Assembly (NCBI RefSeq): GCF_006345805.1
Contig: NC_042997.1
Span: forward strand, 206,646,001-206,710,000
Length of the DNA stretch: 64,000 nt
Origin: Octopus sinensis
Lineage: Eukaryota
Direction of reading: 5' to 3'
Shown: positions 2,768 through 40,293 of the stretch, one piece after another
Numbering within the stretch: position 1 is the stretch's first letter
Layout: every line of letters begins with the position of its first letter
Translations under genes and position numbers: made by a program
The notes under the pieces: generated by a model
Seen by the model: the letters and a program-made list of their open reading frames with translations, nothing else
What the model was told of the DNA's origin: nothing
The model's database searches: none

Positions 2768-5700
2768 GCCTGCTCTCCCACCCCCTCCACCTGTACCGGA
2801 AGTTCCTATCGTTCCTATCCTTTCTCATCCCTGGGTTGCTTCCCATGAACACTGCAAAAGGCATTTCACCATCCCCACCCCCAGTCTCGGTCTATCTCCT
2901 ATGTAAGGTAATGTTCATATAGCGTAAAATATGAAAGGGTAGTGTTATGCAGGTTGAACTGAAGGCTACTGTATTGCTTGCCCATGAATACTGCCAAATG
3001 CAAGTTTTCTTTTCAGGTACATGAAGCTACTGTCCCCCGCCCCAGGGTCTCATGGGCCCACACCTCCCACACCCTCAGGGTTCGCACTCTCAACGTTGGC
3101 ACACTGAAAGGTAGGTCTAGTGAGATCATTGAGATACTTGAACGGAGATGTGTCGATATGTGCTGCATTCATGAAGTGGAGAGGAGGTTCTGCTAGGTTC
3201 CTCACAGGCAAAGAACACAGGTACAATATTTTCTGGGCTGGGAACACTGACAGGGTTGGGGGCGTGGGTATACTTCTCACTGAAAAATGAGTAGATAAGG
3301 TAATTGAGGTAATCAGAGTATGCGACAGAATACTTAAGATTAGATTAGTGCTTCACCATGGATTAGCAACCATTATATTGGGCTATGCCCTTCAACCGAG
3401 GCTACCCGATGGACAGAAATACAGATTCTATGACACCCTACTGCAGACTACCTTGTTGACGAACAACAGGGACCTTCTCTTTGTGGCTGGTGACTTCAAT
3501 GGACATGTTGGACAACATACAGAGGTCTTCTGTGGCATACATGGAGGCTACGGTTATGGTTCCCACAAAAGAGGAGGGAACCAAGCTGCTGGAGTTCTGC
3601 AATGGAAATGATCTTATGGTTTGCAACACTAACTTCAGGAAACCTACCAGTCACCTACCGATCAGACAGACATACTAGCCAAATTGACTACATTCTTGCC
3701 AGGAAAAGGGAAAGATGGCTGCTTATAAATGCCAAAACCTTCCCAGATGAAGAATGTACCCCACAACATAGACTGGTACCTAGTGAATTTAGGATCAAGA
3801 CTAAGTGAATGCCTAGAAGACAACCAGCATGGAGAAGAAGGGTCTGGAAGATATAAGATCCTGTGAATGGACAGAGATTTAGAGACATATTACTCGAAGC
3901 CTTTGACGAAATAGAAGGAGATATAGCTTCACATGGTGTAGAAGACAACTGGAGGTTTCTACGGGATGACATGCTGAGAGCCACTGACCAGATCTGTGGA
4001 TGGTGCAAAGTCCCCTCTTGACTCAAAATAACATGGTAGTTAAACAATGTTGTAAACAGGACTAAAAGAGAAAAGAGACAGGCTTGGAAGGACTGGAAGA
4101 ACGGTGGAAGCAGGGAACTGTATCAGACTGCCAAAAGGAAAGCTAGGAGACAGGTTTATTTAGGCAGGGGGGAAGTAGATAAGAAAAAATTTACCAATGT
4201 TCTGCGCCGTGAGGACCAAAGACTTGAGGTATTTCATGTTGCAAGACAGTGTATGAGAGAGAATCTTGATGTGGTAGGAGAGAAATATGTTCACAAGGAT
4301 GATGGTTCTCTTGCACTAAACGAGGCTGCAAAAAGAGAGATTTGTAGATGCCACTATCAAAGGTTGCTGAATAAAGAAAATGAATGGGAGAAAGAGAATC
4401 TGCCGAATGTCGACCCAACAGAGGAACCAGCTATCCAAGTTGACAGTATCTTGGTAGATAAAGAAATATAAAAAGTATGAAGACAAGGAAAGCCCCCGAC
4501 CCATCAGGAATTACTATAGAGATGCTCAAAATATCTGGCAGTGTCAACATTAGCCTTGTCACCCGTATAGTTAACCAGGTGATACACGAAGGAGTCATAC
4601 CCAATAACTGGTGTAGCAGCATAATAGTAAACTGCTACAAAGGTAAAGGTGATGCTTTAGATACAAATAATTACAGAGGTATCAAGCTGTTGGATCAGGT
4701 AATGAATATCACGGAGAGGGTCATAGCCCAACTAATTGGAAAAAAGAGTCAGTTTGGATGAGATGCAGTTTGGTTTCGTGCCAGGGAAAAGCACCACCAA
4801 TGCCATATTTCTGGTGAGACAGCTGCAAGTGAAATACATAGCCAAAGATAAAACTCTGTACCTGGCTTTCATTGACATGGAGAAAGCCTTTGACAGGGTC
4901 CCCCGATCCCATATCTGGTGGTCAATGAGGAAACTAGGGATAGATGAATGGCTAGTGAGAGCCATGCAAGCCACGTACAGGGATGCTGTCAGTAAAGTGA
5001 AGGTTGGCAATGAGTACAGTGAAGAATTCTGGGTAGAGGTAGGGGTCCACCAAGGTTCCGTCCTCAGCCCGCTCCTGTTTATCATAGTCCTCCAGTCAAT
5101 AACGGGGGAATTTAAGACAGGATGCCCCTGGGAGCTCTTCTATGCTGATGACCTTGCTCTAATTGCTGAGTCACTATCAGAACTGGAGGAGAAGTTTCAA
5201 ATGTGGAAACAAGGATTAGAATTGAAGGGCCTTAGAATCAACCTAGCTAAAACCAAAGTCCTAATAAGTAGTAAGGCAGGCAAACCACAAACGCCTTCAG
5301 GTAGATGGCCCTGTTTGATCTGTAGTAGAGGCATAGGTAGAAACTCTATAAGATGTACCTAGTGTAAGCTATGGACACATAAGAGGTGCAGCAATATCGA
5401 AGGAAGGCTAACTGGGAGGATAGCTTTTGTATGTGGCAGATGCTCAGGAGCTATAAATAACATTGAAATTGTGCAGAGAACAACTTCTGCCACATTCCAG
5501 GGAGAAAAACTAGAAGTAGTTGATAGCTTCCGTTACCTAGGTGACCAAGTCTGTAGCGGAGGAGGGTGCGCTGAAAGTGTAGCTACTAGAATAAGAATAG
5601 CCTGGGCTAAGTTCAGAGAGCTCTTACCTCTGCTGGTGACAAACGGCCTCTTGCTCAGAGTAAAAGTTAGACTGTATGACGCATGTGTACAAACAGCCAT

Positions 5701-6684
5701 GCTACATGGCAGTGAAACATGGGTCGTGACTACTGCGAACATGCATAAGCTCGCAAGGAATGAAGCCAGCATGCTCCGATGGATGTGTAATGTCAGTGTG
5801 CATACTCGACAGAGTGTTAGCGCCTTGAGAGAAAGGTTGGAGCTAAGAATCATCAGATGTAGTGTGCAAGAGAGAGATGACTTCGCTGGTATGGTCATGT
5901 GGCGAGAATGGATGTGGATAGCTGTGTGAAAAAGTGCCACACTCAAGCGGTTGAGGGAACCTGTGGAAGAGGTAGACCCAGGATGAGGTTGTGAAGCATA
6001 ACCTTCGAATATTGGGTGTAACCGAGGCAATGACTAGTGACTGGGACCTCTAGAAATATGCTGTGCTTTAGAAGACGTGGCAAGTGCAAGTGTGACCATA
6101 ACCTTGTGGCATATGCTAGGGGTGTAACCAGTCCACTTATGCGTGCCTTTCCTTCATTGGACACTAAACTCTGCTTGCGAAGACCAGTTGAGGCAAGTGA
6201 AATCGAAATCAAATTTGATGACTGGCATCCGTGCTTGTGGAGTGCTAAGAGTTCCATACAAGTGAGATTATTGCCAGAGCAACAAGCTGGCCTCCGTGCC
6301 GATGGCACGTTAAAAATACCATTCGTGCATGATTGTTACCTGCGTCACCTTACTAGCATTTGTGCTGGGGGCACATGAAAAATAACATTCAAGCGAGGTC
6401 ATTGCCAGTGACACTGGACTGGCTCCTGTGAAGGTGGAACATAAAAAGCACCATTTGAGCGTAGCTGTTGCCAGTACCACTTAACTAGCCCTCATGCCAG
6501 TGGCACATAAAAGGCACCCACTACACTCTCGGAATGGTGGGCGTCAGGAAGGGCATCCAGCTGTAGAAACTCTGCCAGATCAGATTGGAGTCTGGTGCAG
6601 CCATCTGGTTCGCCAGACCTCAGTCAATCGTCCAACCCGTGCTAGCATGGGAAGCGGATGTTAAACGATGATGATGATGATGAT
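2768..6684 (+). mobile_element. Near full-length decayed RTE LINE (PHD-containing family) with 3' UTR and (GAT)n tail
   Basis: APE (LNVGTLKGR, VAGDFNGHVG, QIDYIL); RT (DMEKAFDRVP, GVHQGSVLSPLLF, FYADDL); PHD-like CxxC motifs; ends gttaaacgatgatgatgat. Confidence 0.92.
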
Positions 6685-10762: not shown

Positions 10763-11500
10763 TGAACTTGGCACGTATGTGAGCACACATGTGTATGAGA
10801 CTAATGTGTATAAGTATCTATGCATGTGTGTATCTATGTCCATGCTTTTGGTTTATGTGTGTGTGTATAAGTCTATGCGATGTAACTGTGTGTGCAAGCA
10901 AGTGGATGTATATAAAGCTATTGTGTGTGTTCATGCGTGTTGGTGCGTACATGTGTATATATATGAAGCTAATGCGCACATATCTTGTGTGAGTGTGTGT
11001 GTCTGTGCACCACAATTTAATGTCCATGGCTGGGTGTCCTTCCTGTAGCCAAGTGCTACATGTTTCCAAATGAGGGAATATTTCTCCACTATCAGACATG
11101 TTTTTCATGGAATACTGGAAATGACACAACATCACTTGTGTGATGGTGATGTTCATTTACAACCATCGTGTGCTGTCAACACCTGGCTACTCACCCCCCC
11201 CCCACACACACATATGTATATATATGTATGTATGTATTACAAAATATAAAGTTATATCTTGAGTGACAACAACACTCAAGATATACAACGGACTGGAAAT
11301 AGAAGTGCTCCAATGAGCTGTATACACTTTTTATAAAAAAGTATATATGTATGTATAAATGATGAGCTTCTTTCGGTTTCTATCAATGAAACCCACTCCC
11401 AAGGCTTTGGCCAACCACTGACCTAAAGCAGAAGACACTTGTCCAAAATGCTGTGAGTGGAATTGAACCTGAAACCACGAGGTCAGGAAATTAGCTTCTC
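10763..11500. repeat. TG-rich block plus SINE remnant, paralogous to 39655-40250
   Basis: Same composite order and shared diagnostic variants in both copies. Confidence 0.8.
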
Positions 11501-11519
11501 AACAACATATGTATCTGTT

Positions 11520-12870
11520 TTTTCTAGCGGTGTCATATGAAATTGTCACCCATAATTATGATCCTAGTATCGATCTATTGCATTTCAATCTGTTTTAGGG
11601 GTGGGGGGAAGGGTATCTTTTTTTCTTCACAAATGTAAATAAACCCAATGTGTTTCTTAAACGAGGGACATAGTCATACGGCATAGAATGCTTTTTAACT
11701 CAACAGACGCCAGTGATTGGTTGAAATTGAAGAAATTAAAGACCAAATATCTTACAAACTATAGAATTTTCTCAATAAAGCCAAGAGAAAAAGATGTTTT
11801 ATAAACACATTCTACCAGTATACAAAGTTTAACATTTTTTAGTTAACTAGAAATTATGTTTAAAACTGCCGGTCAAACCGAAAAGATCCAAATAATGTTT
11901 TCTTTTGACACTTTCTACCAGTATACGAAGTTTTAGAGTGTTTGTTGAAAACTGCCGTTCAAAAGGAAAAGATCCCCTTTATGTTTGTCCCCTCTGTGGG
12001 CAGTAAAGAAAAAAAAAATGGAATGAGACGGCATTCGGTAAATTCCGTAAATTCACTGAACGAACACATGGCAGAGACGTAAAGGGACCCGTCCGCCCCT
12101 TTAGATAAAAAAAAAATTGTTTTTATGGAATCCCACGTTTTCGGCTATGGAGATTTCCGATTTTGAAAAGAAAAACTGTTTGTAAAATTTCAATTAAAAA
12201 AAGACCAAAAAAAAACCCCCGGAGATTACCGCAACCCCCCGAATCAGAAGATAGTCGAAGTATATCGCTGAGTCATTTTGGCGATATGAAGTGGTCTGGG
12301 CGATCTCCATAAATTCACTGAACGAACACATGGCAGAGACGTAAAGGGACCCGTCCGCCCCTTTAGATAAAAAAAAAAATTGTTTTTATGGAATCCCACG
12401 TTTTCGGCTACGGAGATTTCCGATTTTGAAAAGAAAAACTGTTTGTAAAATTTCAATTAAAAAAAGACCAAAAAAAAAAAACCCCAGAGATTACCGCAAC
12501 CCCCCAAATCAGAAGATAGTCGAAGTATATCGCTGAGTCATTTTGGCGATATGAAGTGGTCTGGTGTCGACGGATCTATGTTTCGAGAAATTTATGGATT
12601 TACAGCGAAGAAAAGATTCCCAGAATTTCTTATAACATTTCTCAAACCCTTTTGCCCAAGTTTATTCCCAACGGACGTTTCAGTCGTGAAAAGAAAAACA
12701 CTTTCATTTCACTTTGTCACATATTACTCTGAAGGAAATTACTCTGAAAAGAAACCTTTGCAGAAAAGAAGGTGAGTAGATTCATTCCATATTTCTTTCA
12801 TTATGTTATCGCAGTTTTGTGAGATTTGGCTGTTATTTCTAGCATAATTCCTCTGTTCATTTTCAGGCAG
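11520..12870. repeat. Unclassified dispersed repeat containing a ~262-265-bp tandem duplication (12048-12299 / 12310-12564)
   Basis: Near-identical taaattcactgaacgaac...gaagtggtctgg blocks; motifs shared with 23510-24110 (agggtatctttt, ttcacaaatgtaaataaac). Confidence 0.6.
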
Positions 12871-13043
12871 CAGGATGAAGGAGAATTGCCAACTTTGTTC
12901 AGCTACAACAAAGGACATAAAAAACTTTATTGATATTTAAGGGCACAAATTTTGATTCAGTTCCTAGAGATGCCAATATTTTAATATTACATTTCTTCTC
13001 TCACCTAAATGTAAATACAAAGACAAGAACGAGAAGACATATA

Positions 13044-16000
13044 TTTTACTTTGAAAACAAAAGATTCTAACCTTTGAAACTATTTTTGCCTTGGCTTTTT
13101 GCTGCCTTCGGAAAATTTGTATCATCTTTGATGTTTTTCAATCAATTATCTTTTATGTTTAAATATATGAGAGGTTCGTTTTCGATTCCAAAGAGCATCG
13201 GTTCCTTTAATCTCGCCATTTAGATGACATGAAACTCAAAAAAGCTCTCACAAAGATTTTACCTTGATCAAAATTCTAAACCTTTGAAACTATTTTTGTC
13301 TTGGCTTTTTGCGGCCTTCGGAAAATTTGTATCATCTTTGATGTTTTTCAATCAATTATCTTTTATGTTTAAATATATGAGAGGTTCGTTTTCGATTCCA
13401 AAGAGCATCGGTTCCTTTAATCTCGCCATTTAGATGACATGAAACTCAAAAAAGCTCTCACAAAAATTTTACCTTGATCAAAAGATTCTAAACCTTTGAA
13501 ACTATTTTTGCCTTGGCTTTTTGCGGCCTTCGGAAAATTTGTATAATCTTTGATGTTTTTCAATCAATTATCTTTTATGTTTAAATATATGAGAGGTTCG
13601 TTTTCGATTCCAAAGAGCATCGGTTCCTTTAATCTCGCCATTTAGATGACATGAAACTCAAAAAAGCTCTCACAAAAATTTTACCTTGATCAAAAGATTC
13701 TAAACCTTTGAAACTATTTTTGCCTTGGCTTTTTGCGGCCTTCGGAAAATTTGTATAATCTTTGATGTTTTTCAATCAATTATCTTTTATGTTTAATATA
13801 TGAGAGGTTCGTTTTCGATTCCAAAGAGCATCGGTTCCTTTAATCTCGCCATTTAGATGACATGAAACTCAAAAAAGCTCTCACAAAAATTTTACCTTGA
13901 TCAAAAGATTCTAAACCTTTGAAACTATTTTTGCCTTGGCTTTTTGCGGCCTTCGGAAAATTTGTATCATCTTTGATGTTTTTCAATCAATTATCTTTTA
14001 TGTTTAAATATATGAGAGGTTCGTTTTCGATTCCAAAGAGCATCGGTTCCTTTAATCTCGCCATTTAGATGACATGAAACTCAAAAAAGCTCTCACAAAA
14101 ATTTTACCTTGATCAAAAGATTCTAAACCTTTGAAACTATTTTTGCCTTGGCTTTTTGCGGCTTCGGAAAATTTGTATCATCTTTGATGTTTTTCAATCA
14201 ATTATCTTTTATGTTTAAATATATGAGAGGTTCTTTTTCGATTCCAAAGAGCATCGGTTCCTTTAATCTCGCCATTTAGATGACATGAAACTCAAAAAAG
14301 CTCTCACAAAAATTTTACCTTGATCAAAAGATTCTAAACCTTTGAAACTATTTTTGACTTCGCTTTTTGCTGCCTTCGGAAAATTTGTATCATCTTTGAT
14401 GTTTTTCAATCAATTATCTTTTATGTTTAAATATATGAGAGGTTCGTTTTCGATTCCAAAGAGCTTCGGTTCCTTTAATCTCGCCATTTAGATGACATGA
14501 AACTCAAAAAAGCTCTCACAAAGATTTTACCTTGATCAAAAGATTCTAAACCTTTGAAACTATTTTTGTCTTGGCTTTCGGCCTTCGGAAAATTTGTATC
14601 ATCTTTGATGTTTTTCAATCAATTATCTTTTATGTTAAATATATGAGAGGTTCGTTTTCGATTCCAAAGAGCATCGGTTCCTTTAATCTCGCCATTTAGA
14701 TGACATGAAACTCAAAAAAGCTCTCACAAAAATTTTACCTTGATCAAAAGATTCTAAACCTTTGAAACTATTTTTTTGCCTTGGCTTTTTGCGGCCTTCG
14801 GAAAATTTGTATAATCTTTGATGTTTTTCAATCAATTATCTTTTATGTTTAAATATATGAGAGGTTCGTTTTCGATTCCAAAGAGCATCGGTTCCTTTAA
14901 TCTCGCCATTTAGATGACATGAAACTCAAAAAAGCTCTCACAAAAATTTTACCTTGATCAAAAGATTCTAAACCTTTGAAACTATTTTTGCCTTGGCTTT
15001 TTGCGGCCTTCGGAAAATTTGTATCATCTTTGATGTTTTTCAATCAATTATCTTTTATGTTTAAATATATGAGAGGTTCGTTTTCGATTCCAAAGAGCAT
15101 CGGTTCCTTTAATCTCGCCATTTAGATGACATGAAACTCAAAAAAGCTCTCACAAAAATTTTACCTTGATCAAAAGATTCTAAACCTTTGAACTATTTTT
15201 GCCTTGGCTTTTTGCGGCCTTCGGAAAATTTGTATCATCTTTGATGTTTTTCAATCAATTATCTTTTATGTTTAAATATATGAGAGGTTCTTTTTCGATT
15301 CCAAAGAGCATCGGTTCCTTTAATCTCGCCATTTAGATGACATGAAACTCAAAAAAGCTCTCACAAAAATTTTACCTTGATCAAAAGATTCTAACCTTTG
15401 AAACTATTTTTGACTTCGCTTTTTGCTGCCTTCGGAAAATTGTATCATCTTTGATGTTTTTCAATCAATTATCTTTTATGTTAAATATATGAGAGGTTCG
15501 TTTTCGATTCCAAAGAGCTTCGGTTCCTTTAATCTCGCCATTTAGATGACATGAAACTCAAAAAAGCTCTCACAAAGATTTTACCTTGATCAAAAGATTC
15601 TAAACCTTTGAAACTATTTTTGTTTGGCTTTTTGCGGCCTTCGGAAAATTTGTATCATCTTTGATGTTTTTCAATCATTATCTTTTATGTTTAAATATAT
15701 GAGAGGTTCGTTTTCGATTCCAAAGAGCTTCGGTTCCTTTAATCTCGCCATTTAGATGACATGAAACTCAAAAAAGCTCTCACAAAGATTTTACCTTGAT
15801 CAAAAGATTCTAAACCTTGAAACTATTTTTGTCTTGGCTTTTTGCGGCCTTCGGAAAATTTGTATCATCTTTGATGTTTTTCAATCAATTATCTTTTATG
15901 TTAAATATATGAGAGGTTCGTTTTCGATTCAAAGAGCATCGGTTCCTTTAATCTCGCCATTTAGATGACATGAACTCAAAAAAGCTCTCACAAAAATTTT

Positions 16001-19000
16001 ACCTTGATCAAAAGATTCTAAACCTTTGAAACTATTTTTGCCTTGGCTTTTTGCGGCTTCGGAAAATTTGTATCATCTTTGATGTTTTTCAATCAATTAT
16101 CTTTTATGTTTAAATATATGAGAGGTTCGTTTTCGATTCCAAAGAGCATCGGTCCTTTAATCTCGCCATTTAGATGACATGAAACTCAAAAAAGCTCTCA
16201 CAAAAATTTTACTTGATCAAAAGATTCTAAACCTTTGAAACTATTTTTGCCTTGGCTTTTTGCGGCCTTCGGAAAATTTGTATCATCTTTGATGTTTTTC
16301 AATCAATTATCTTTTATGTTTAAATATATGAGAGGTTCGTTTTCGATTCCAAAGAGCATCGGTTCCTTAATCTCGCCATTTAGATGACATGAAACTCAAA
16401 AAAGCTCTCACAAAAATTTTACCTTGATCAAAAGATTCTAAACCTTTGAAACTATTTTTGCCTTGGCTTTTTGCGGCCTTCGGAAAATTTGTATCATCTT
16501 GATGTTTTTCAATCAATTATCTTTTATGTTTAAATATATGAGAGGTTCTTTTTCGATTCCAAAGAGCATCGGTTCCTTTAATCTCGCCATTTAGATGACA
16601 TGAAACTCAAAAAAGCTCTCACAAAAATTTTACCTTGATCAAAAGATTCTAAACCTTTGAAACTATTTTTGACTTCGCTTTTTGCTGCCTTCGGAAAATT
16701 TGTATCATCTTGATGTTTTTCAATCAATTATCTTTTATGTTTAAATATATGAGAGGTTCGTTTTCGATTCCAAAGAGCTTCGGTTCCTTAATCTCGCCAT
16801 TTAGATGACATGAAACTCAAAAAAGCTCTCACAAAGATTTTACCTTGATCAAAAGATTCTAAACCTTTGAAACTATTTTTGTCTTGGCTTTTTGCGGCTT
16901 CGGAAAATTTGTATCATCTTTGATGTTTTTCAATCAATTATCTTTTATGTTTAATATATGAGAGGTTCGTTTTCGATTCCAAAGAGCATCGGTTCTTTAA
17001 TCTCGCCATTTAGATGACATGAAACTCAAAAAAGCTCTCACAAAAATTTTACTTGATCAAAAGATTCTAAACCTTTGAAACTATTTTTGTCTTGCTTTTT
17101 GCGGCCTTCGGAAAATTTGTATCATCTTTGATGTTTTTCAATCAATTATCTTTTATGTTTAAATATGAGAGGTTCGTTTTCGATTCCAAAGAGCATCGGT
17201 TCCTTTAATCTCGCCATTTAGATGACATGAAACTCAAAAAAGCTCTCACAAAAATTTTACCTTGATCAAAAGATTCTAAACCTTTGAAACTATTTTTGCC
17301 TTGGCTTTTTGCGGCCTTCGGAAAATTTGTATCATCTTTGATGTTTTTCAATCAATTATCTTTTATGTTTAAATATATGAGAGGTTCGTTTTCGATTCCA
17401 AAGAGCATCGGTTCCTTTAATCTCGCCATTTAGATGACATGAAACTCAAAAAAGCTCTCACAAAAATTTTACCTTGATCAAAAGATTCTAAACCTTTGAA
17501 ACTATTTTTGCCTTGGCTTTTTGCGGCCTTCGGAAAATTGTATCATCTTTGATGTTTTTCAATCAATTATCTTTTATGTTTAAATATATGAGAGGTTCGT
17601 TTTCGATTCCAAAGAGCATCGGTTCCTTTAATCTCGCCATTTAGATGACATGAACTCAAAAAAGCTCTCACAAAAATTTTACCTTGATCAAAAGATTCTA
17701 AACCTTTGAAACTATTTTTGCCTTGGCTTTTTGCGGCCTTCGGAAAATTGTATCATCTTTGATGTTTTTCAATCAATTATCTTTTATGTTTAAATATATG
17801 AGAGGTTCTTTTTCGATTCCAAAGAGCATCGGTTCCTTTAATCTCGCCATTTAGATGACATGAAACTCAAAAAGCTCTCACAAAAATTTTACCTTGATCA
17901 AAAGATTCTAAACCTTTGAAACTATTTTTGACTTGGCTTTTTGCTGCCTTCGGAAAATTTGTATCATCTTTGATGTTTTTCAATCAATTATCTTTTATGT
18001 TTAAATATATGAGAGGTTCGTTTTCGATTCCAAAGAGCATCGGTTCCTTTAATCTCGCCATTTAGATGACATGAAACTCAAAAAAGCTCTCACAAAGATT
18101 TTACCTTGATCAAAAGATTCTAAACCTTTGAAACTATTTTTGTCTTGGCTTTTTGCGGCCTTCGGAAAATTTGTATCATCTTTGATGTTTTTCAATCAAT
18201 TATCTTTTATGTTTAAATATATGAGAGGTTCGTTTTCGATTCCAAAGAGCTTCGGTTCCTTTAATCTCGCCATTTAGATGACATGAAACTCAAAAAAGCT
18301 CTCACAAAGATTTTACCTTGATCAAAAGATTCTAAACCTTTGAAACTATTTTTGTCTTGGCTTTTTGCGGCCTTCGGAAAATTTGTATCATCTTTGATGT
18401 TTTTCAATCAATTATCTTTTATGTTTAAATATATGAGAGGTTCGTTTTCGATTCCAAAGAGCATCGGTTCCTTTAATCTCGCCATTTAGATGACATGAAA
18501 CTCAAAAAAGCTCTCACAAAAAGTTTACCTTGATCAAAAGATTCTAAACCTTTGAAACTATTTTTGCCTTGGCTTTTTGCGGCCTTCGGAAAATTTGTAT
18601 CATCTTTGATGTTTTTCAATCAATTATCTTTTATGTTTAAATATATGAGAGGTTCTTTTTCGATTCCAAAGAGCATCGGTTCCTTTAATCTCGCCATTTA
18701 GATGACATGAAACTCAAAAAAGCTCTCACAAAAAGTTTACCTTGATCAAAAGATTCTAAACCTTTGAAACTATTTTTGCCTTGGCTTTTTGCGGCCTTCG
18801 GAAAATTTGTATCATCTTTGATGTTTTTCAATCAATTATCTTTTATGTTTAAATATATGAGAGGTTCTTTTTCGATTCCAAAGAGCATCGGTTCCTTTAA
18901 TCTCGCCATTTAGATGACATGAAACTCAAAAAAGCTCTCACAAAAATTTTACCTTGATCAAAAGATTCTAAACCTTTGAAACTATTTTTGACTTCGCTTT

Positions 19001-20200
19001 TTGCTGCCTTCGGAAAATTTGTATCATCTTTGATGTTTTTCAATCAATTATCTTTTATGTTTAAATATATGAGAGGTTCGTTTTCGATTCCAAAGAGCAT
19101 CGGTTCCTTTAATCTCGCCATTTAGATGACATGAAACTCAAAAAAGCTCTCACAAAAATTTTACCTTGATCAAAAGATTCTAAACCTTTGAAACTATTTT
19201 TGCCTTGGCTTTTTGCGGCCTTCGGAAAATTTGTATCATCTTTGATGTTTTTCAATCAATTATCTTTTATGTTTAAATATATGAGAGGTTCGTTTTCGAT
19301 TCCAAAGAGCATCGGTTCCTTTAATCTCGCCATTTAGATGACATGAAACTCAAAAAAGCTCTCACAAAAATTTTACCTTGATCAAAAGATTCTAAACCTT
19401 TGAAACTATTTTTGCCTTGGCTTTTTGCGGCCTTCGGAAAATTTGTATCATCTTTGATGTTTTTCAATCAATTATCTTTTATGTTTAAATATATGAGAGG
19501 TTCGTTTTCGATTCCAAAGAGCATCGGTTCCTTTAATCTCGCCATTTAGATGACATGAAACTCAAAAAAGCTCTCACAAAAATTTTACCTTGATCAAAAG
19601 ATTCTAAACCTTTGAAACTATTTTTGCCTTGGCTTTTTGCGGCCTTCGGAAAATTTGTATCATCTTTGATGTTTTTCAATCAATTATCTTTTATGTTTAA
19701 ATATATGAGAGGTTCTTTTTCGATTCCAAAGAGCATCGGTTCCTTTAATCTCGCCATTTAGATGACATGAAACTCAAAAAAGCTCTCACAAAAATTTTAC
19801 CTTGATCAAAAGATTCTAAACCTTTGAAACTATTTTTGACTTCGCTTTTTGCTGCCTTCGGAAAATTTGTATCATCTTTGATGTTTTTCAATCAATTATC
19901 TTTTATGTTTAAATATATGAGAGGTTCGTTTTCGATTCCAAAGAGCTTCGGTTCCTTTAATCTCGCCATTTAGATGACATGAAACTCAAAAAAGCTCTCA
20001 CAAAGATTTTACCTTGATCAAAAGATTCTAAACCTTTGAAACTATTTTTGTCTTGGCTTTTTGCGGCCTTCGGAAAATTTGTATCATCTTTGATGTTTTT
20101 CAATCAATTATCTTTTATGTTTAAATATATGAGAGGTTCGTTTTCGATTCCTTTTATCTCGCCATTTAGATGACATGAAAATCAAAAACTCTCTCTCACA
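13044..20200. repeat. 212-bp satellite array, ~34 copies
   Basis: Period of 212 measured at several points (e.g. 13488/13700, 19180/19392); highly homogeneous monomers with no unique spacers. Confidence 0.98.
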
Positions 20201-22170
20201 ATAAGATGATGTTCCTGGTAAGTACAAAGGAAACTGTTTTGAAAACATTGATAGACTTTAAGTCCATAGATTTCAAAATAAATACCACTTTCTGCATGTT
20301 GTTTTATGAGTTTATGAAGAATTCAGAGCTTTTGTCGAAGTTTCTTTGAATTAATACTTCTTCATCAGAAAGTTCATCCGTCTTTAAGCTTTCCTTCTAG
20401 CTTCCAATGTTCGGTAGTACTTCTACAGATTTGCGAAACTTTGGGAATAAATGGCCTATGGGACTTAGATTTCATAATTTACCAAATGTTGAATTTTCAT
20501 CGAAATCTATTCGTTTTCCCAAATTTTTTATGGCAGAAGGAAGAGAAAATTTAAAGTCTTCAACTTTCTTTCGAACCTCGTCAATTTTTCAATTGTTGTT
20601 CATCTTGAAAGCCGAAAAAATTCTTCTGCATATCGATTTATTGATTCTTAAACCTGTCCTGATATCGAAAATATCTACTACTGTCCTTTCAGTTTTTTTT
20701 TCAAGTTCTTTAATTGATAATTTGTATACCCCCATTACATGTTGCGAAAACATCAGAGTTCAATAATTTGGAGGTTATATCTGTGGAATCCTCATCAATG
20801 GAAAGAAGCTTATATAATTCTTTAGATGAATCATTTCCTAAGAAAAATAGGAACTCAAGGCTTTCCCAGAAAGTAAAATTCTTTCAATACATGCCTGAAG
20901 TGATAACCATCTGGTAGGTACATGCCGAAGAATCTCTCCATATCCTGTCTCTGCAAATAAATGAAAGTCTTTAAGAGTTTCTGTTCTTTTTGCCGATACT
21001 GAAAAATGCCCAGATATCTTTAGGATAATATTTTCTACATCACCATAAGTAGGCGAGCTGGCAGAACCGTTAGCATGCCGGGCGAAATGCGTAGCCGTAT
21101 TTCGTCTGCCGCTACGTTCTGAGTTCAAATTCCGCCGAGGTCGACTTTGCCTTTCATCCTTTCGGGATCGATTAAATAAGTACCAGTTACGCACAGGGGT
21201 CGATATAATTGACTTAATCCGTTTGTCCTTGTTTATCCCCTTGTGGGTAGTAAAGAAACATAATATTTTCTACATTTAAGTTTTCCAAAGCACTTTTTAC
21301 TGAATTATGTAAAATGTGTGCACTGCAATTGGCTTTAATAACACTGTTATTTAGTGTGAGAATGTTAGAATATAAAGAATGCTTTATTCCAAAATTGCAA
21401 CTTGTATTATCTGCAGTAAAACCTGAAAGTCTTTCCCAGTCGAGTTGCAAATTGCCCAAAATCTTTCTCAAACGTCCTAAACATTCCATCTACACTTTCA
21501 TCAGCATTCTCAAAAAAGTCAATAAGGTTATTATTCTCTGCACCATGTTCCATATTGAAATATTGAACACATACGGGAAACCTTTCCCCGTTTGTTTGTT
21601 TTTTTTTGTGTGTGTGCCTAGAAATATCAATTTTGAAGGCAAAACTATAGAGGAGGATCATGTTGTTTCGAATATTTCAATGCTACCTCTAATGCTTTTT
21701 TGATGTAACACATTCGTAACTATGGCCTCCGATTTGGTCCGACCACAAGATATCTTTCCAGCTACTTTGGAATCCTGGTAAAATTTTGAATTTAATTTCA
21801 AGCTACAATCAAGGGAGTTGTAGGAATGATTGTGTTTAACTGCATGATATATATATCTGAGCTACTTCTCAAGCAATTACATTATCTTCTTCTTCTTTTG
21901 TATTGGCTTTTACGAAAAATTTATCAATTAAAGATTTAGAAAGTGAAGCACTGCGGTTACTTTTATGCCTATCAGAAGTCTTGTGTTGTTTGATAGCTAC
22001 AACAGCCATACAGCCAATTTTAAAGGTCCTATTACGAGTAATGCATTTTGCCTCTTGTTGCTAACCGTTCATACTCCTTTTCCAGTTTTTGTTATACGAG
22101 CACAATCTCTTCTTTTTCGCTGAGGGTTCCCCGTCACTACAAAATATTAAGCAGTCGCTGCTGTCCCGCC
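20150..22170 (-). pseudogene. hAT transposase pseudogene
   Basis: HAVKHNHSYNSLDC...KISCGRTKSEAIVTNVL; FPVCVQYF; GFTADNTSCNFG; ANCSAHILHN (CxxH); LRHVPTRWLSL; PGTSSYCER...MSSKWRDKRNR (dimerization domain); numerous stops and frameshifts. Confidence 0.88.
21041..21259 (+). mobile_element. tRNA-derived SINE inserted in the hAT transposase, with 16-bp TSD
   Basis: ataatattttctacat at 21025-21040 and 21260-21275; box-B-like gagttcaaattcc; related copies at ~24660-24858 (-) and ~44655-44880 (+). Confidence 0.9.
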
Positions 22171-24659
22171 TTACAAATGCATTAAAACCTTATGGAAGAA
22201 AATAGTTTATTTAGCATTGAAATAAAATATATGTTCCAAAGCAAGGTCGAGAGTCGATGATGAATCATATACGCGCACAGACGCCATTAGAAGATATTTC
22301 AAATATGTGACTATAGCTTAGGCTATGGTAGGTCTATTTAGCTTCTGAAAAAAGCAAATTCTGCTAGCGCATAAAGCCCAGAATTTCTTATAACTTCAAA
22401 CTCCTATATTCTCTAGCCTACTTCTTTGCCATTTAATGGGTGTGTGTGTGCAAGAGAGCTAGCATCCAACTGAATGAGCGACAAGCAGTGGGCCTCACAG
22501 GCTTGCGATGATGTCACTAGCTATATTGAATTTGAAAATAATAATTACTCATTGTAATTTTTCACCAACCATGACTATATTAAGTAAAAAGATAGTATGT
22601 GGCCCAACAAACATGTATGTAAAGTGTGCACAACTTAGAATGTGAACTGAAATTGAAATGCTAGCACTTGAAAAGTTGGTACATTCTTGTAACAATGTAA
22701 AAATTATCATGTCTCGAAAACACACTTTCAATTAATATTGTTATCTGATATTAACATGAAATATTGGCACTACTGTTACAAGTTTTCTCACATAGATTTC
22801 ACTGTTCTTCTGATATTTATAACAAATTATGGCTTGATTTTGTGAAGGGCCTCATCACTACCTTGTTGTATAATACGCCATATTTGTTTTGGTTGTTCTT
22901 CTTCGTGAGTCCCAGCTCATTTCAGGCAGAGTTATTGCCTTTCCAAATGGCCAACGGCACCTCCTTTTTTATTGTTTTATTTTTCTTTTCTTTTTTCTTG
23001 GTGATGATTCTCATATTTAGTCACATAGTTTACGATTTTCTCGTTTTCCCAAAATGAGTGCCTTCGGTTTTGAAATGGAGAATCGAGTTATACATAAAAC
23101 GAGGCTAATTTTACACCCTGGTCTGCGGTCTGCCGCTCTGTGCTTCTGGTATTGTGCACAGAAGCAGAGTTGACAGTCCGTACTTGCACAAGAAGTAAAC
23201 GCTTTTGCAGTCACATCTTGAGAGCGGGAAATTGAACTAACAGTCAAAACGATTTCAAATCTCAATAAAGGACAAGTGCTGAATAAAGGACGGTTGGCAA
23301 CCCTAGCACGAAGTGGCGAGGGGTGTATGGATCAGTTTTGGAATTTCCTCATAGAGAATTTGAAATTAATTATCTACCCCCCCCCCCATGTTTTTAATCG
23401 GCAAAATTACGGCATGAGTACCGTTACTGTCAACCAGGAGCACGTGCTTTTGTTTACATTTGAAGAATAAGATTGTCGCTTTCCGTAAATTAAAAATTTT
23501 GTAAAAAATATATGTGGGGTGGCGAGGAAGGGTATCTTTTCAAGTCGGCGTAAAAGCGAGACAGAGAGCACGATTGGATCGGGGAAGTTCTTTTGAAGTT
23601 GGCCTCTGTGTGAATGCTACAATTTTGTTCCTGCTGCTCACTTGTTCTTTCTCTGGGTTTATTTTTTTTATGTTTGTTGGCGATTTAATGATCAGATTCA
23701 TAGATACGTTATTATTATTATTATTATTATTCGTTTATATTTGTTTTGAAATGTATTGTATAAATACAGGCCCGTAATTCTATTCTTGAAGCCCTTGGAT
23801 GCAGAGACGTTTGGAACTTAAAATCTTTCGTTTTGCACGCACACACACACACACACACACAGTGACACGCAAGCACAGACACACACACGCAAGCACACAC
23901 ACACACAAGCACTCGCACATTAATTCTTCAGATTCACGCTAACTTCAAAAGAACCTCCCTCATACAATCGTGCTCTCTCTCTGTGTCTCTTTTGCTTTCA
24001 CGCCGACTTCATTTCCCACCAACACCATATGTAGTAAAAATATTAAAAAAATTTACGGAAATCAACGATCACCTTCACAAATGTAAATAAACATACGTGG
24101 TTTGTAACTAGCAGTCGTGTGTTCTTGTAACGAAAGATCACCTCTTAATCTCTATTCTTCCACGCTAATTGAAAAAAAAAAAAAAGAAAATTCGAAAAAA
24201 GTTAAAATTTAAAAATGAGGAGGGAGGGACTTAATATTTTGAAAAAATGGTTCATTGCATATTCAAAAAAAAGGGCGATTTTCGTGCTGGTGTACTTGTA
24301 AACATTAACTTTATAAAAGGCAGGCTGTGTGTGTATGTGAATGTAATTTATGCATGTCCATAAATTAGCACGCAAATTTTAGGACATTGGTCATGACCAT
24401 GGCTGTGCTTTTGTCAACTTATTTTCCCAGAAGCAACCGCAAATAGCAGTAAAAATCGATTTTCAACCATAGCTTTTTAGCAATTTCCACGTCAGTGAAA
24501 TCCTTAAGTTTGCTAACATTAGTTTAAGTCCCCTGTATAGCAATGGCAAAAAAGGAAATCAAAAGGTAAATTTTGAGATTAACACTCGCACGATTTTCAC
24601 TAAGAAAAAAAAAAAAAACGGATTTTTTTCATAGAATCTAGTTACCTGAGAGAGAGAAT

Positions 24660-24858
24660 AAGGCCAGCAATTTCATGGGAGGGGGTGAGTTAATTATATT
24701 GTACCCCAGTGTACAACTGGTACTTATTTTATAGACCTGGAAAAGATGAAAGGCAAAGTCAACTTTGATGGAATTTGAACTCAGAAAGTAAAGCCAGGGG
24801 GAATGCTGCTAACCATTTTGCCCAGCATGCTAATGGTTCTGCTAGCTTGCCGCCTTCA
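24660..24858 (-). mobile_element. SINE of the same family as 21041-21259
   Basis: Reverse complement reads aggcggcaagctagcagaaccattagc...gagttcaaattcc...gactttgcctttcatc. Confidence 0.8.
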
Positions 24859-25786: not shown

Positions 25787-27873
25787 GTGCCAGGGAAAAG
25801 TACCACTGATGCTATATTCCTGGTAAGGCAGCTGCAGGAGAAATACCTAGCCAAAGATAAGCCCCTGTACCTGGCTTTTGTTGACATGGAGAAAGCCTTC
25901 GACAGGGTCCCCCGATCCCTCATATGGTGGTCAATGAGGAAACTAGGAATAGATGAATGGTTAGTGAGAGCTGTGCAAGCCATGTACAGGGACGCTGCTA
26001 GTAAGGTGAGGGTTGGAAATGAGTACAGTGAAGAATTCCGGGTAGAGGTAGGGGTCCACCAAGGCTCAGTCCTCAGCCCCCTCCTATTTATCATAGTCCT
26101 CCAGGCAATAACGGAGGAATTCAAGACAGGATGCCCCTGGGAGCTCCTCTATGCTGATGACCTTGCTCTAATTGCTGAGTCATTATCAGAACTGGAGAAG
26201 AAGTTTCAGGTGTGGAAGCATGGTTTAGAATCGAAGGGCCTTAGAGTCAACCTAGCTAAACCCAAAGTCCTAATAAGTAGGAAGGTAGACAAATCACAAA
26301 CGCCTTCAGGTAGATGGCCCTGCTCGATCTGTAGAAAAGGTGTAGGTAGAAACTCTATAAGATGCACCAAGTGTAAGCTATGGACACATAAGAGGTGCAG
26401 CAATGTCATAGGAAGGCTAACTAGGAAGATGGTTTTTGTATGTGGCAGATGCTCGGGAGCATTAACCTCTGAAAATCTGCAGAAAACAACTTCCGTCACT
26501 TTCCAGGGGGAAAAACTAGAAGTAGTTGATAGCTTCCGTTATCTTGGTGACCAAGTCAGTAGTGGGGGTGGGTGTGCTGAAAGTGTAACGGCTAGAGTAA
26601 GAATAGCCTGGGCAAAGTTTAGGGAGCTCTTACCTCTGTTGGTGACTAAAGGCCTCTCGCTCAGAGTAAAAGGCAGACTGTATGATGCATGTGTACGAAC
26701 AGCCATGCTACATGGCAGTGAAACATGGGCCGTGACTGCTAAGGACATGCGTAAGCTCGCGAGAAACGAAGCCAGTATGCTCCGTTGGATGTGTAATGTC
26801 AGTGTTCATAGTCGACAGAGTGTAAGTACCTTGAGAGAAAAGTTGGACCTAAGAGGAATCAGATGTTGTGTGCAAGAGAGACGATTGCGCTGGTATGGTC
26901 ATGTGGTGAGAATGGATGAAGATAGGTGTGTGAAAAAGTGCCACACCCTGGCAGTTGAGGGGACCTGTGGAAGAGGTAGACCCAGGAAAACCTGGGTCGA
27001 GGTGGTGAAGCACGACCTTCGAACTTTAGGTCTCACCAAGGAAATGACCAGAGACCGAGACCTATGGAAGTATGCTGTGCGTGAGAAGACCCGGCAAGAC
27101 CAGTGAGAACAATCAAAATCAAATCATATATCAGAAAGCAGGGGTTAAGTGACCCATCCGTTCGTGTCCGCTGTCAGCCTCATCTGGCACCCGTGCCGGT
27201 GATACGTAAAAAGCACCATTCGCTCGTGGCCGTTTGCCAGCTCTGCCTGGCCCCGTGTCGGTGGCACGTAAAAGCACCATCCGTTCGTGTTCGTTGCCAG
27301 CCTCGCCTGGCCCCGTGCCGGTGACACGTAAAAGCACCGTCCGTTCATGGCCGTTTGCCAGCTCTGTCTGGCCCCGTGTCGGTGGCACGTAAAAGCACCA
27401 TCCGTTCGTGGCCGTTTGCCAGCTCTGTCTGGCCCCGTGTCGGTGGCACGTAAAAGCACCATCCGTCCGTGTCTGTTGCCAGCCTCGGCTGGCCCCCGTG
27501 CCGGTGACACGTAAAAGTACCGTCCGTTCGTGGCCGTTTGCCAGCTCTGTCTGGCCCCGTGTCGGTGGCACGTAAAAGCACCATCCGTTCGTATCCGTTG
27601 CCAGCATCGCCTGGCCCCGTGCCGGTGACACGTAAAAGCACCATCCGTTCGTGGCCGTTCACCAGCTCTGTCTGGCACCTGTGCAGGTGGCACGTAAAAA
27701 ACACCCACTACACTCGCGGAGTGGTTGGCGTTAGGAAGGGCATTCAGCCGTAGAAACACTGCCAGATCTGACTGGGCCTGACGAAGCCTTCCAGCTTCAA
27801 AGACCCCAGTTGACCCGTCCAACCCATGCTAGCATGGAAAGCGGACGCTAAACGATGATGATGATGATGATGA
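25787..27873 (+). mobile_element. Young 5'-truncated RTE LINE with an uninterrupted 439-aa RT/PHD C-terminal ORF (25787-27106), minisatellite 3' UTR and (GAT)n tail
   Basis: DMEKAFDRVP, HQGSVLSPLLF, LYADDL, C4HC3 motif, GRGRPRKTW; no internal stops; begins abruptly after a (TA)n run. Confidence 0.95.
27140..27700 (+). repeat. 60/61-bp minisatellite (~9 units) in the RTE 3' UTR
   Basis: gtaaaagcacc anchor at 27268, 27328, 27389, 27450, 27511, 27572 and 27632. Confidence 0.95.
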
Positions 27874-36541: not shown

Positions 36542-39390
36542 CGGGGGCGTAGGTATACTTTTTGCAGGAAAATGGTTAGATAAGGTAACTGAGGTAGTCA
36601 GAGGATGTGACAGAATACTTAAGATCAGATTAGTGCTTCATCATAGGTTAGCAACCATTATCTCAGCCTTTACTCCTCAGCCACGGCTACCCGATGGACA
36701 GAAAGACCGATTCTATGACACCTTCTTACAGATTACCACATTAACGAATGACAGGGACCTTCTCTTTGTGGCTGGTGACTTCAATGGACATGTTGGACAA
36801 CATGCCAGGGGCTTCCATGGCATACATGGACGCTACGGTTTTGGCTCTTGCAATGAGGAGGGAACCAGACTGCTGGAGTTCTGTGATGCAAATGATCTTA
36901 TGGTTTGCAATACTTATTTCAGAAAAACCTGCAAGTCACCTAGTCACCTACTGTTCTGGCAGTATTGACTATATCCTCACCAGTAAAAGAGAAAGATGGC
37001 TGCTTATAATTGCCAAAACATTCCCAGGCGAAGAATGCACCCCACAACATAGACTGGTAGTTAGTGACTTCAGGATCAGGGCTAAATGGATGCCCAGAAG
37101 ATGACCTGCATGGAGGAGAAGGGTCTGGAAGCTTAAAGATCCTGGAATGGACAGAGATTTAGAGACATATTACTTGAAGCCTTTGACGAAATAGAAGGGG
37201 ATATAGCTTCACACGATGTAGAAGACAACTGGAGGATTCTACGGGACAACCTGCTGAGGGCCAATGACCAGATGTGTGGATGGTGCAAAGTCCCATCTTG
37301 AGCCACAATAAACTTGTGGTGGAACAATGTTGTTGACAGGGCTATCAGAGAAAAGAAACAGGCTCTGAAGGACTGAAAGAACGGAGGTAGCAGGGAATTG
37401 CATCAGACTGCCAGAAGGGAAGCAGATAAGAAAAAGGTATCTCGTGTTGCAAAACAATGTGTGAGAGTGAATCGTGATGTAGGGGAGAAATGTGTTCGCA
37501 TGAATGATGGTTCACTTGCACTAAACGAGGCTGCAAAGAGAGAAATTTGGAGATACCACTACAAAAGGTTACTCAATAAAGAGAATGAATGAGAAAAAGA
37601 GAGTCTGCTGAATGTCGACCCCACAGAGGGATAAGCTATTGGGAGATAAAGCGATTAAGGGTCTGAAGACCAGCTATCCATGTTGACAGTACCTTGGTAG
37701 ATAAAGCAATTAAGACAGGGAAAGCCCCCGGTCCATGAGGAAGAGATACTCAAAATATCTGGCAGTGTCGGCTATAGCCTAGTCACCCGTATAGTTAACC
37801 AGGTGATACACGAAGGAGTCATACCCAATGACTGGTGTAGCAGCACTATAGTCAACTGCTACAAAAGAAATGGTGACGCATTAGATACAAATAATTAATG
37901 AGGTATCAAGTTGTTAGATTAATTAATGAAGGTCATGGAGAGGGTCAGTTTAGATGAAATGCCGTTTGGGTTCATGCCAGGGAAAAGTACCACTGATACT
38001 ATATTTCTGGTAAGAAAGCTGCAAGAGAAATACCTAGCCAAAGATAAACCTCTGTACCTGGCTTTTGTTGACATGGAGAAAACCTTTGACAGGGTCCCAC
38101 AATCCCTTATCTGGTGGTCAATGAGGAAACTAGGGATAGATGAATGGTTAGTAAGAGCTGTGCGAGCCATGTACAGGGATGCTATCAGTAAGGTGAGGGT
38201 TGGCAACAAGTACAGTGAAGAATTCCGGGTAGAGGTAGGAGTCCACCAAGGTTCAGTCATTAGCCCCCTCCTATTTATCATAGTCCTCCAGGCAATAACA
38301 GAGGAATTCAAGACAAGATGTCCCTGGGAGCTCCTCTATCCTGACGACCTTGCTCTAATTGCTGAGTCACAATCAGAAATTGAGGAGAAGTTTCAGGTGT
38401 GGAAACAAGGTTTAGAATCAAAGGGCCTCAGAGTCAACCTAGCTAAAACCAAAGTCCTAATAAGTAGGAAGGTAGACAAACCACAAATCCCTTCAGGTAG
38501 ATGGCCCTGCTCGATCTGTAGAAAATGCGTAATTAGAAACTCTATAAGATGTACCCAGTGTAAGCTATGGACACAAAAGGGGTGCAGTAATATCAGAGGA
38601 AGACTAACTGGGAGGATAGTTTTTGTATGTGGCAGATGCTCAGGAGCAATAAACACTGAAAATGCACAGAGAGCAACTTCTGCCACATTCCAGGGAGAAA
38701 AACTAGAAGTAGTTGAGAGTTTCCGTTATCTAAGTGACCAAGTCAGTAGCGAAGAAAGGTGCGCTGAAAGTGTAGCTGCTAGAATAAGAATAGCTTGGGC
38801 AAAGTTCAGAGAGCTCTTACCTCTGCTGGCGACAAAGGGCCTCTCGCTCAGAGTAAAAGTTAGACTGTATGACACATGTATGAACAGCCATGCTACATGG
38901 CAGTGAAACAAGGGCTGTGACTGCTGAGGATATGCATAGGCTCGCAAGGAATGAAGCCAGTATGCTCCAATGGATGTGTAATATCAGTGTTCATACTCAA
39001 CAGAGTGTAAGTACCCTGAGTGAAAAGTTGGACCTAAGAAGCATCAGATTGGGGTGCAAGAGAGACGGCTGTGCTGGTATGGACATGTGGCGAGAATGGA
39101 TGAAGATAACTGTGTGAAAAAGTTCCACAACCTAGCGACTGAGGGAACCTGTGGAAGAGGTAGACCCAGGAAGACCTGGGATGAAGTGGTGAAGCCCGAC
39201 CTTCGAACATTAGGCCTCACTGAGGAAATGACTTGTGACCGAGACTTTTGGAAATATGGTGTGCATGAGAAGACCCGGCAGGACAAGTGAGACCATAACC
39301 TCGTATCCTATGCCAGGGGTGTAACCAGCCCACTTATACGTACCTTTCCTTCATTGGCCACTAAACTGTGCTTGTGAAGACCTGTTGAGG
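36542..39390 (+). mobile_element. RTE LINE (APE through C-terminus), decayed, 5' end in the gap
   Basis: VAGDFNGHVG; 326-aa RT ORF 37926-38906 with PHD; GRGRPRKTW. Confidence 0.92.
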
Positions 39391-40293
39391 CTCAAGAAGA
39401 CCTCTCCTCCACAGCAGAAGTGTATCAACTTTATGCTTAGAGAAAATAGGAAGTGTTTAACATTTTGAGCCTACTCTTTGACAGAAAGAATAGAAGAAGA
39501 GAGAGAGAATAGAAGAAACGTGTGTCAGAGTGTGACTACAAGCTGAAATGATGGGAGGAGGAGGAAGAGGTTGCTGAAGGGTGTCAGTGGCTCTGGCAAC
39601 CTAGGGAGACATCTATGAGTGCTGACTTGAGGTACGAGTGACAAGGGAGACAACTATGAACCTGGCATGTAGGTGAGCATACGTGTGTATGAGACTAATG
39701 CGTACATATATATACTCTATGAATTTGTGCATGTGTATGAGTATCTATGCATGTGTGTATGTATGTCCATGCTTTCGGTTTATGTGTGTGTGTGTGTTCA
39801 TGTGTGTGTGTGTGTTCATGTGTATGTATATGAAGCTAATGCACACTATCTTGTGTGAGTGTGTGTGTCTGTCCACCATAATTTAATGTTCATGGTTGGG
39901 TGTCCTTTTTGTAGCCAAGTGTCACATGTTTCCACATGAGGGAATATTTCCCCATGGTCAGACATGTTTTTCATGGAAAACTGGAAAAGACACAACATCA
40001 CTTGTGTGATGGTGATTTACAACCATCGTGTGCTGTCAACACCTGGCTACTAATCCTAACCCTAACCCTAACCCCACACACACACATGTATGTATAAATG
40101 ATGAGCTTCTTTCAGTTTCTATCAACGAAATCCACTCCCAAGGCTTTGGCCAACCATTGACCTATAACAGAAGACACTTGTCCAAAATGCTGTGAGTGGA
40201 ATTGAACCTGAAACCACAAGGTCAGGAAGCAAGCTTCTCAACCACACTTGGATCTAAAAAGAAACATTAACTATAAAAAATGGTATTACTAAC

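Follow-up and report, generated by a model that had tools for sequence, protein, structure and literature searches.

We have examined a 64-kb window of Octopus sinensis DNA (contig NC_042997.1, positions 206,646,001 to 206,710,000; the coordinates used below are those of the window), the minus strand of which carries a decayed DNA transposon of the hAT type with a long tandem array inside it. The array occupies positions 13040-20201 on the minus strand and consists of 34 monomers of ~212 bp, as judged from Tandem Repeats Finder, from splitting of the sequence at an anchor, from alignment of the monomers, and from tblastn searches with intact relatives of the transposase. It begins where the remains of the transposase gene end, and it leads into the native 3' tail of the same element. 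Below, we describe the array, the gene from which its repeat unit derives and the ends of the transposon, and we then consider how the array may have arisen.

Tandem Repeats Finder reported a single array at 13058-20151, with a period of 212, 33.6 copies, 97% matches and a score of 13540. When the minus strand was split at the anchor GTGAGAG, the region resolved into 34 head-to-tail monomers from 20199 down to 13040, the starts of which run from 20199 to 13251 at a spacing of 208-214 bp, except for the first copy, which measures 198 bp. These observations agree with the original prediction, made from the letters alone, that about 34 near-identical copies of a 212-bp unit lie at 13044-20200. 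Alignment of the inner monomers (m02 to m33) gave a mean of 2.86 substitutions per 212 bp (1.35%), such that these copies are ~98.6% alike. At the monomer junctions within the array …GGTAAAATTTTT is followed directly by GTGAGAGC…, and the 27-nt sequence that spans the junction is CAAGGTAAAATTTTTGTGAGAGCTTTT.

The array is non-coding. We observed no open reading frame of more than 50 aa within it on either strand, which agrees with the earlier claim that no repetitive protein is produced; the reason then offered, that 212 is not a multiple of 3, was insufficient, because it is the presence of stops in every frame that closes the array to translation. Outside the array the monomer was found neither in the window nor in the 60 kb of related loci that we examined, and a search of the window against Rfam gave no match. 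A junction-spanning peptide had 0 matches in 5.8 billion predicted proteins and the junction DNA was absent from JGI metagenome contigs, the host genome not being among the collections searched in either case. In the window, the protein collection and the JGI metagenomes taken together, no second site or scar of the array was found.

The region adjoining the array, at 20202-22150 on the minus strand, was recognized from its stop-free pieces and by tblastn as a decayed hAT transposase pseudogene that corresponds approximately to residues 8-570 of intact relatives. Its reading frame shifts at least 6 times and is interrupted by 6 or more in-frame stops, and the description of the parent element as heavily decayed was therefore correct. 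We compared a 61-aa piece of this region (21444-21262) with 1.84 billion representative proteins and obtained 185 matches (best expect value, E=7.8e-19), including full-length proteins of 560-660 aa; the named relatives are from Lepidoptera and fishes. All 16 of the 16 full-length relatives examined matched Pfam PF05699, the hAT C-terminal dimerisation region (best E=3e-10), with the curated gathering cut-off exceeded by 6 of the first 10, even intact members of this family scoring near the threshold. A profile built from the 16 relatives matched the C-terminal domain of the Hermes transposase (PDB 4D1Q, 2BW3, 6DWW and 8EDG) with E of about 2.3e-8. In the RNase-H-like DDE core, the collinear match to Hermes in the C..H...N / PTRW.S region was weak (4.1 bits). 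The Glu of the C-E-R motif pairs in the profile alignment with one Hermes residue, which we take to be the catalytic E572. Local tblastn searches with 2 intact relatives, P0019 (residues 8-572) and P0011 (residues 53-521), aligned these proteins to 22126-20217 with E=1e-37 to 1e-40. The assignment of the parent to the hAT superfamily of DNA transposons, as had been proposed for the flank of the array, is supported by these results. The contig that encodes P0011 (L001) was tried as a DNA comparison and set aside, as it was too divergent and had no recognizable ends.

The repeat unit is homologous to the 3' coding end of this gene. Intact relatives matched every monomer by tblastn over their last 60-80 residues, in 2 frames: on each monomer P0011 aligned through residues 511-549 and 552-588 of its 590, in 2 frames, and P0019 aligned in the second frame through residues 603-643 of 644. 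The paired two-frame alignments gave Expect(2)=3e-8 against a trimer of the consensus monomer and E of about 2e-5 in the whole window. In 2 monomers a chance one-base deletion restores the frame, so that the alignment becomes continuous, with residues 511-590 at 42.5% identity (E=1.7e-6) in one and residues 528-588 at 45.9% (E=2.7e-6) in the other. The C-terminal consensus of the family, ...ERVFS..KWRDERNRCS..LIK.ELLIYFN....LLKAAKS.KKY.F*, is colinear with the monomer. The peptides on which the original prediction relied are all present: MSSKWRD*RNRCSLES and IKDDTNFPKAAKSQGK are 2 frames of the consensus monomer, the second-frame peptide being real homology as the two-frame alignments show, and PGTSSYCEREFLIFMSSKWRDKRNR lies in a stop-free piece at 20257-20111 that comprises flank sequence and the first monomer, m01. 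This last piece matched a profile of the family C-terminus with E=3.8e-5 among 3,298 six-frame pieces of the window. Since the relatives align to every monomer, in 2 frames and as far as their last residues, the repeat unit is, to judge from the sequence, the segment that extends from the C-E-R motif through the last ~63 codons and the stop codon to ~26 nt beyond it.

To compare the array with elements of the same family we used 3 related copies (L006, L007 and L008) from long contigs of ENA assemblies, which show 67-79% DNA identity to the element in the window. In each of the 3, the segment equivalent to the monomer is present in one copy only, which leads into the same 3' tail, and in none of them is there a 212-bp repeat. 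L008 is a complete element of 2,648 bp, with termini TAGGGTTGCCAACCGTC... and ...CATAGCTGGCAACCCTA and a perfect 8-bp target duplication, CCTACATG; in this complete copy the terminal repeats of the family are seen to begin TAGGGTTGCCAAC....

The ends of the octopus element were found only by way of the terminus of this complete relative, a direct search for inverted repeats between the flanks having given nothing convincing. The 5' terminal inverted repeat, TAGGGTTGCCAACCGTC, lies at 23289-23305 on the minus strand, and the first 22 nt of this end, TAGGGTTGCCAACCGTCCTTTA at 23305-23284, agree with the 5' end of L008 without a mismatch (22/22); this 22-mer occurs once in the window and 0 times in 100 shuffles. 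The 3' terminal inverted repeat, at 12881-12897 on the minus strand, is degenerate (the plus strand reads GAGAATTGCCAACTTTG, the family consensus being TAGGGTTGCCAACTGTG) and occupies the position homologous to the terminal repeats of L007 and L008 in the alignment. When the last 55 nt of L008/L007 were aligned to the window, the best placement was 12919/12924-12886, with scores of 18/17, and shuffled sequences scored 9 +/- 1.3, with 0 of 500 reaching the observed score. Immediately outside the 2 ends are the copies of a target-site duplication, CTTCATCC on the minus strand at 12873-12880 (3' copy) and CTTCGTGC at 23306-23313 (5' copy), which agree with each other at 6 of 8 positions. With both ends and the target duplication in place, the element can be assigned to 12881-23305, a length of 10,425 bp, ~6.9 kb of which is surplus monomers.

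Between the array and the 3' terminal repeat, at 12898-13039 on the minus strand, the element has kept its own non-coding 3' tail (flank B), with AATAAA at about 12931-12926. Flank B matched positions 11258-11417 of the single-copy element L006 at 71% identity (E=2.5e-44), 13039-12902 being collinear with it, and the 3' tail from 13039 to 12886 is collinear with the related single-copy elements. The original prediction had interpreted this left flank as a 3' untranslated region that continues to a degenerate terminal inverted repeat at 12881, and the collinear tail, the 22-nt terminus at 23305 and the 6/8 duplication are all in accord with that interpretation. At the other end, the 5' non-coding region (22151-23288, minus strand) is ~870 bp longer than its counterpart in L008 and mostly not alignable with it. 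The segment 22130-23230 had no match to L008, to the rest of the window or to the fetched loci, and may represent an unrecognized insertion.

In the aggregate, the element exhibits the properties by which hAT transposons are known: an 8-bp target duplication (perfect in L008), short terminal inverted repeats (exact at the 5' end of the window copy, degenerate but positionally homologous at the 3' end), and the C-terminal PF05699 domain, seen through the relatives, the Hermes profile match and the 20257-20111 piece. The array is internal to this transposon: it is flanked by the two ends of the element, its monomer corresponds by homology to a defined segment of it, and the relatives have that segment in single copy.

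Several minor observations concern the element and its surroundings. A pair of candidate terminal repeats at 13037-13055 and 22217-22234 (E=1.2) was rejected, as it had no target duplication, was AT-rich and overlapped the last monomer, m34. An exact 18-nt direct repeat, CCCAGAATTTCTTATAAC, is present at 12619-12636 and 22377-22394 and can be extended with gaps to ~30 nt; one copy is 245 bp outside the 3' end of the element and the other is in the 5' region, and a chance origin is unlikely. We considered whether this repeat could be the long target duplication of a retro-copied transposase transcript and rejected the idea, there being no A-tail and one copy lying outside and the other inside the element. 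Just outside the 3' end of the element there is also a two-copy tandem duplication (12044-12564, ~263 bp, 92-99% identity). The transposase gene itself is interrupted by a SINE-like (short interspersed element-like) insertion at 21041-21259, the 2 copies of its 16-bp target duplication, at 21025-21040 and 21260-21275, being identical (the feature as a whole spans 21025-21275); the insertion is absent from L006, L007 and L008, in which its 2 flanks are contiguous, and related SINE-like copies are found in the window at 24688-24851 and 44654-44983. A different hAT-type element is also present on the L008 contig, where a gene called at 572-904, ~8 kb upstream of the copy used in our comparison, carries DUF4371 and FAM200/ZBED5 RNase-like domains.

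The monomers at the 2 edges of the array retain features that the inner monomers have lost. Monomer m01 (20002-20201, minus strand) is continuous with the gene and keeps both the C-E-R frame and a Lys codon: it has an in-frame GAGAGAGAG run (C-E-R-E-F) and AAA (Lys), whereas the inner copies lack 2 nt and have TAA there. It also has a private 16-bp deletion, which is flanked by GGAA. Monomer m34 (13040-13251, minus strand), which runs into flank B, keeps the ancestral in-frame TAG stop (13069-13067): it reads GGT TAG, with the stop as in L006, as against GGT TTA G in the inner copies. Monomer m34 diverges from the others over its last ~30 nt, and it has private changes (GTTTTCAAAG) at positions where the array consensus (GATCAAGG) agrees with L006. 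Edges of this type are expected for an array of the form A-X(n)-B that was built in situ, the outer terminal parts of which were never overwritten by exchange. The array arose in place, and the parent element and both boundaries are preserved, as had been proposed, with one edge monomer joined to the gene and the other to the native 3' tail.

The outer edge segments differ from the consensus by roughly 8-15%, a figure based on very few sites, as compared with 1.35% among the inner copies. It follows that the last expansion was recent, and that the first duplication is possibly considerably older. The original prediction of a recent amplification from a dead transposon is thus upheld for the last expansion and not for the order of events that it implied. 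A duplication that included the stop codon would leave the first copy of the gene intact, so that death of the transposon before the duplication cannot be claimed; the first duplication may be old and need not postdate the death of the gene.

The order of the monomers along the array carries further information. We identified 10 recurrent variable sites that define 13 substitution haplotypes among the 34 monomers, and the order of these haplotypes along the array is abcdd eff ghicddj gbckd ghbcdl gbcdll gm; haplotype c follows b in 4 of 4 cases. The mean substitution distance between monomers is lowest (~2.0) at lags of 5-6 and 11-12 monomers, and rises to 3.2-3.6 at lags of 2-3, 8-10 and 13-14 monomers. 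Permutation tests on these distances gave p=0.009 when their range across lags was taken as the statistic, and p=0.05 when the minimum was taken. The array has a higher-order pattern of 5-6 monomers.

We infer the following history for the locus, to which, taken as a whole, we would give a probability of about 0.82: a hAT copy inserted at 12881-23305, the 3' end of its coding region was duplicated in situ, blocks of the duplicate were multiplied by exchange, and the array is a neutral by-product. The starting point would be an autonomous element of the hAT superfamily, which inserted on the minus strand and made the 8-bp target duplication. A segment of ~212-217 bp, with the C-E-R motif of the C-terminal hAT domain at one end and ~26 nt beyond the stop codon at the other, was then duplicated in tandem in situ; this in situ origin we regard as shown, together with the anatomy, the homology and the higher-order pattern, whereas the molecular mechanism and the neutrality of the array are inferred. 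The breakpoints share a short TGT / TAT(A)TGT match, and the first duplication would most likely have been a slippage or microhomology-mediated event at this match. The duplicate would have grown to about 5-6 copies, which diverged slightly from one another, and blocks of 5-6 monomers would have been multiplied by unequal exchange between sister chromatids or homologues to give 34 copies. Unequal exchange, together with gene conversion, would have kept the inner copies alike, and the outer parts of the edge copies would have escaped. What is left is presumably a neutral by-product in a dead transposon, and the array is most likely without function.

It should be noted that some of our results weigh against this history or against steps in the argument for it. 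The profile check that the original prediction had proposed failed on the window's own sequence: a Pfam search of ten stop-free pieces of the parent gene, all of them short, gave no hAT match. Single pieces from inner monomers, when compared with the C-terminal profile of the family, gave E=0.4-6, which is not significant; we regard the inner monomers as homologous because of the two-frame tblastn alignments and because of their >95% DNA identity to, and continuity with, m01. The 3' terminal repeat matches the family consensus at 13/17 positions, which on sequence alone is the level expected by chance. The microhomology at the breakpoints comprises only 3-7 AT-rich bases, and is compatible with slippage and proves nothing. 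Also, as a single strand the monomer does not fold more stably than shuffled sequences (z=+1.7), so that a model in which slippage was driven by a hairpin is without support. Finally, one-base homopolymer deletions are confined to monomers m12-m27 (14500-17900), with none in m02-m11.

This last observation bears on the integrity of the assembly. The deletions in m12-m27 are likely to reflect an unpolished long-read consensus, being typical of such a consensus beyond the reach of short-read polishing, and the exact copy number is therefore provisional. They could be taken to mean that the array is an assembly artefact, that is, that the true number of copies at the locus is much lower (or much higher) and that a short repeat was expanded or collapsed by the assembler. 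Such an artefact is the least probable of the explanations we have considered. The 13 haplotypes recur in an order that could not be created from one or two copies, which eliminates the one-or-two-copy expansion that the original prediction had itself named as fatal to it, and at both edges the array gives way to unique sequence that has collinear counterparts in the single-copy relatives. Another alternative is growth through a circular intermediate: a circle of 212 bp (or of 5-6 monomers) would be excised, copied by rolling-circle replication into a concatemer, and recombined into the same site. A circle route is proposed for long-monomer satellites in a study of Locusta migratoria (PMC4935994, model figure), and it is compatible with the highly uniform length of the monomers that we observed and with their arrangement in blocks. 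Yet both boundary monomers are chimeric, being ancestral in their outer and homogenized in their inner parts, as is expected for local unequal exchange, no second site or scar was found in the collections searched, and nothing in the data requires a circle; we consider this route very improbable.

The remaining alternatives we also regard as unlikely, if less so. Possibly, the first duplication was linked to the transposase, and arose by faulty gap repair or template switching after an attempted excision, with ordinary exchange later. The distance of the duplicated segment from the 3' terminus is ~160-370 bp, and tracts of double-strand-break repair would be expected to pass through this region; a duplication that includes the stop would have spared the first copy of the gene, such that the element could have stayed active. 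The junction, on the other hand, is simply head-to-tail, with no footprint, filler DNA or inverted segment, and nothing similar is seen in the 3 other copies of the family, so that this origin seems to us quite doubtful. A slightly less doubtful proposal is that we are dealing not with a private and inert array but with one member of a satellite family that is dispersed, or with a repeat that has a function, for instance as a source of small RNAs, in chromatin or in connection with the centromere. Both the monomer length and the higher-order structure are of the kind typical for satellites, and the window, like many small-RNA clusters, is densely populated by transposons. Against this, neither the window nor the 60 kb of related loci holds another monomer, and the junction peptide and DNA are missing from the protein and JGI metagenome collections, a weak argument given that the host genome is not among them.

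In its internal organization the array conforms to what is understood by a satellite, namely head-to-tail monomers that are homogenized within the array, often with higher-order periodicity. The original prediction holds in all its main structural points; the label 'satellite' in a genome-wide sense goes beyond the evidence. There is a slim chance that we see here the first array of a young satellite family of octopods, which is about to spread or has only just begun to do so. If so, one could follow a satellite back, nucleotide by nucleotide, to its source in that portion of a transposase gene where the catalytic Glu and the dimerisation domain are encoded, and sense or antisense transcripts of the array might feed small-RNA silencing of the hAT family.

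The history that we favor, of in situ duplication followed by exchange, has counterparts in other systems. Internal tandem repeats that seed satellites are present in the Tetris foldback element of D. virilis. The central repeats of DINE-1/Helitron elements likewise seed satellites in Drosophila (PMC9659126, Table 1). The octopus array resembles both in that it lies between the ends of a class II element and would have been expanded by unequal exchange; it differs from them in that the DINE-1 and Tetris repeats are family-wide, non-coding and mobile, whereas the 3 relatives of the octopus element have no array and its repeat unit is the end of the transposase gene. Among transposon-derived tandem repeats in general, terminal repeats, long terminal repeats and untranslated regions are the commonest donors, and the few cases that derive from open reading frames are all from long interspersed elements (LINEs) (PMC9659126). 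In Locusta migratoria, LmiSat15-190 corresponds to coding sequence of Gypsy and LmiSat34-299 to coding sequence of Polinton, and LmiSat29-68 and LmiSat55-90 match non-coding parts of hAT transposons (PMC4935994). As in the locust, the homology of the octopus monomers is to the interior of a transposon, coding sequence included, and hAT elements are among the donors. The locust satellites are dispersed and are known through database similarity to consensus elements, whereas at the octopus locus the donor, both junctions and both ends have been kept; and the donor here is hAT coding sequence, in contrast to the non-coding hAT cases of the locust.

The use of the 3' end of an element as the substrate for amplification is known from retrotransposons. 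In pea, the 3' untranslated region of Ogre retrotransposons gave rise to the PisTR-A satellite; in the chicken, that of CR1, together with part of ORF2 (open reading frame 2), gave rise to the HinfI/SCR1 repeat (PMC9659126). The octopus array is similar to these in the part of the element that was amplified, the chicken repeat also including part of a reading frame, but its donor is a DNA transposon and it is represented by a single known array of 7.2 kb, whereas the pea and chicken repeats are abundant satellites. With Hermes and other hAT elements (PDB 2BW3, 4D1Q, 6DWW, 8EDG) the octopus element shares the 8-bp duplication, short terminal inverted repeats and the C-terminal S/C-E-R-x-F-S motif; it differs from Hermes in that its family is distant, only the C-terminal ~70 residues matching significantly, and in that the copy in the window is dead.

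By these comparisons the locus represents an ordinary kind of event that is unusually well preserved, and it introduces no new mechanism, element class or category. The usual evidence for a transposon-born repeat is the similarity of a dispersed satellite to a consensus element. In the present case one locus displays the donor gene, the boundaries of the repeat unit, edge monomers that were not homogenized, the first layer of 5-6 monomers, the ends of the transposon and its target duplication. It is useful, therefore, as a worked example for models of satellite birth and array homogenization, and copy-number variation among octopods could be followed with the array as a marker.

The window is otherwise largely transposon debris. 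At 41922-42398 a 115-bp unit is repeated 4.1 times with 97% identity, and the unit matches part of the SINE family that inserted into the hAT gene; this second transposon-derived tandem array in the window suggests that the process is common in the genome. Another array, GC-rich and composed of 61/183-bp units (27154-27699), directly follows a LINE reverse-transcriptase frame of 439 aa (25787-27106) and looks like the 3'-end tandem repeat of a retrotransposon. Further LINE reverse-transcriptase fragments are located at 4736-5929, 37926-38906 and 46118-47312, and a mariner-like transposase frame at 58608-59255 on the minus strand. A 22-bp unit is repeated ~59 times at 48436-49745 (77% matches); this repeat has a strong purine/pyrimidine strand skew and creates spurious open reading frames of 350-460 aa. 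On the minus strand at 40289-41818 there is a PARP14-like open frame of 509 aa that ends at the start of the macro domain; its best matches, in Octopus vulgaris, O. sinensis and O. bimaculoides, are 69-77% identical to it (77% in the comparison with Octopus vulgaris proteins), and although these matches assign the window to an octopod, in line with the assumption of the original prediction, none of them is close enough to be the same gene.

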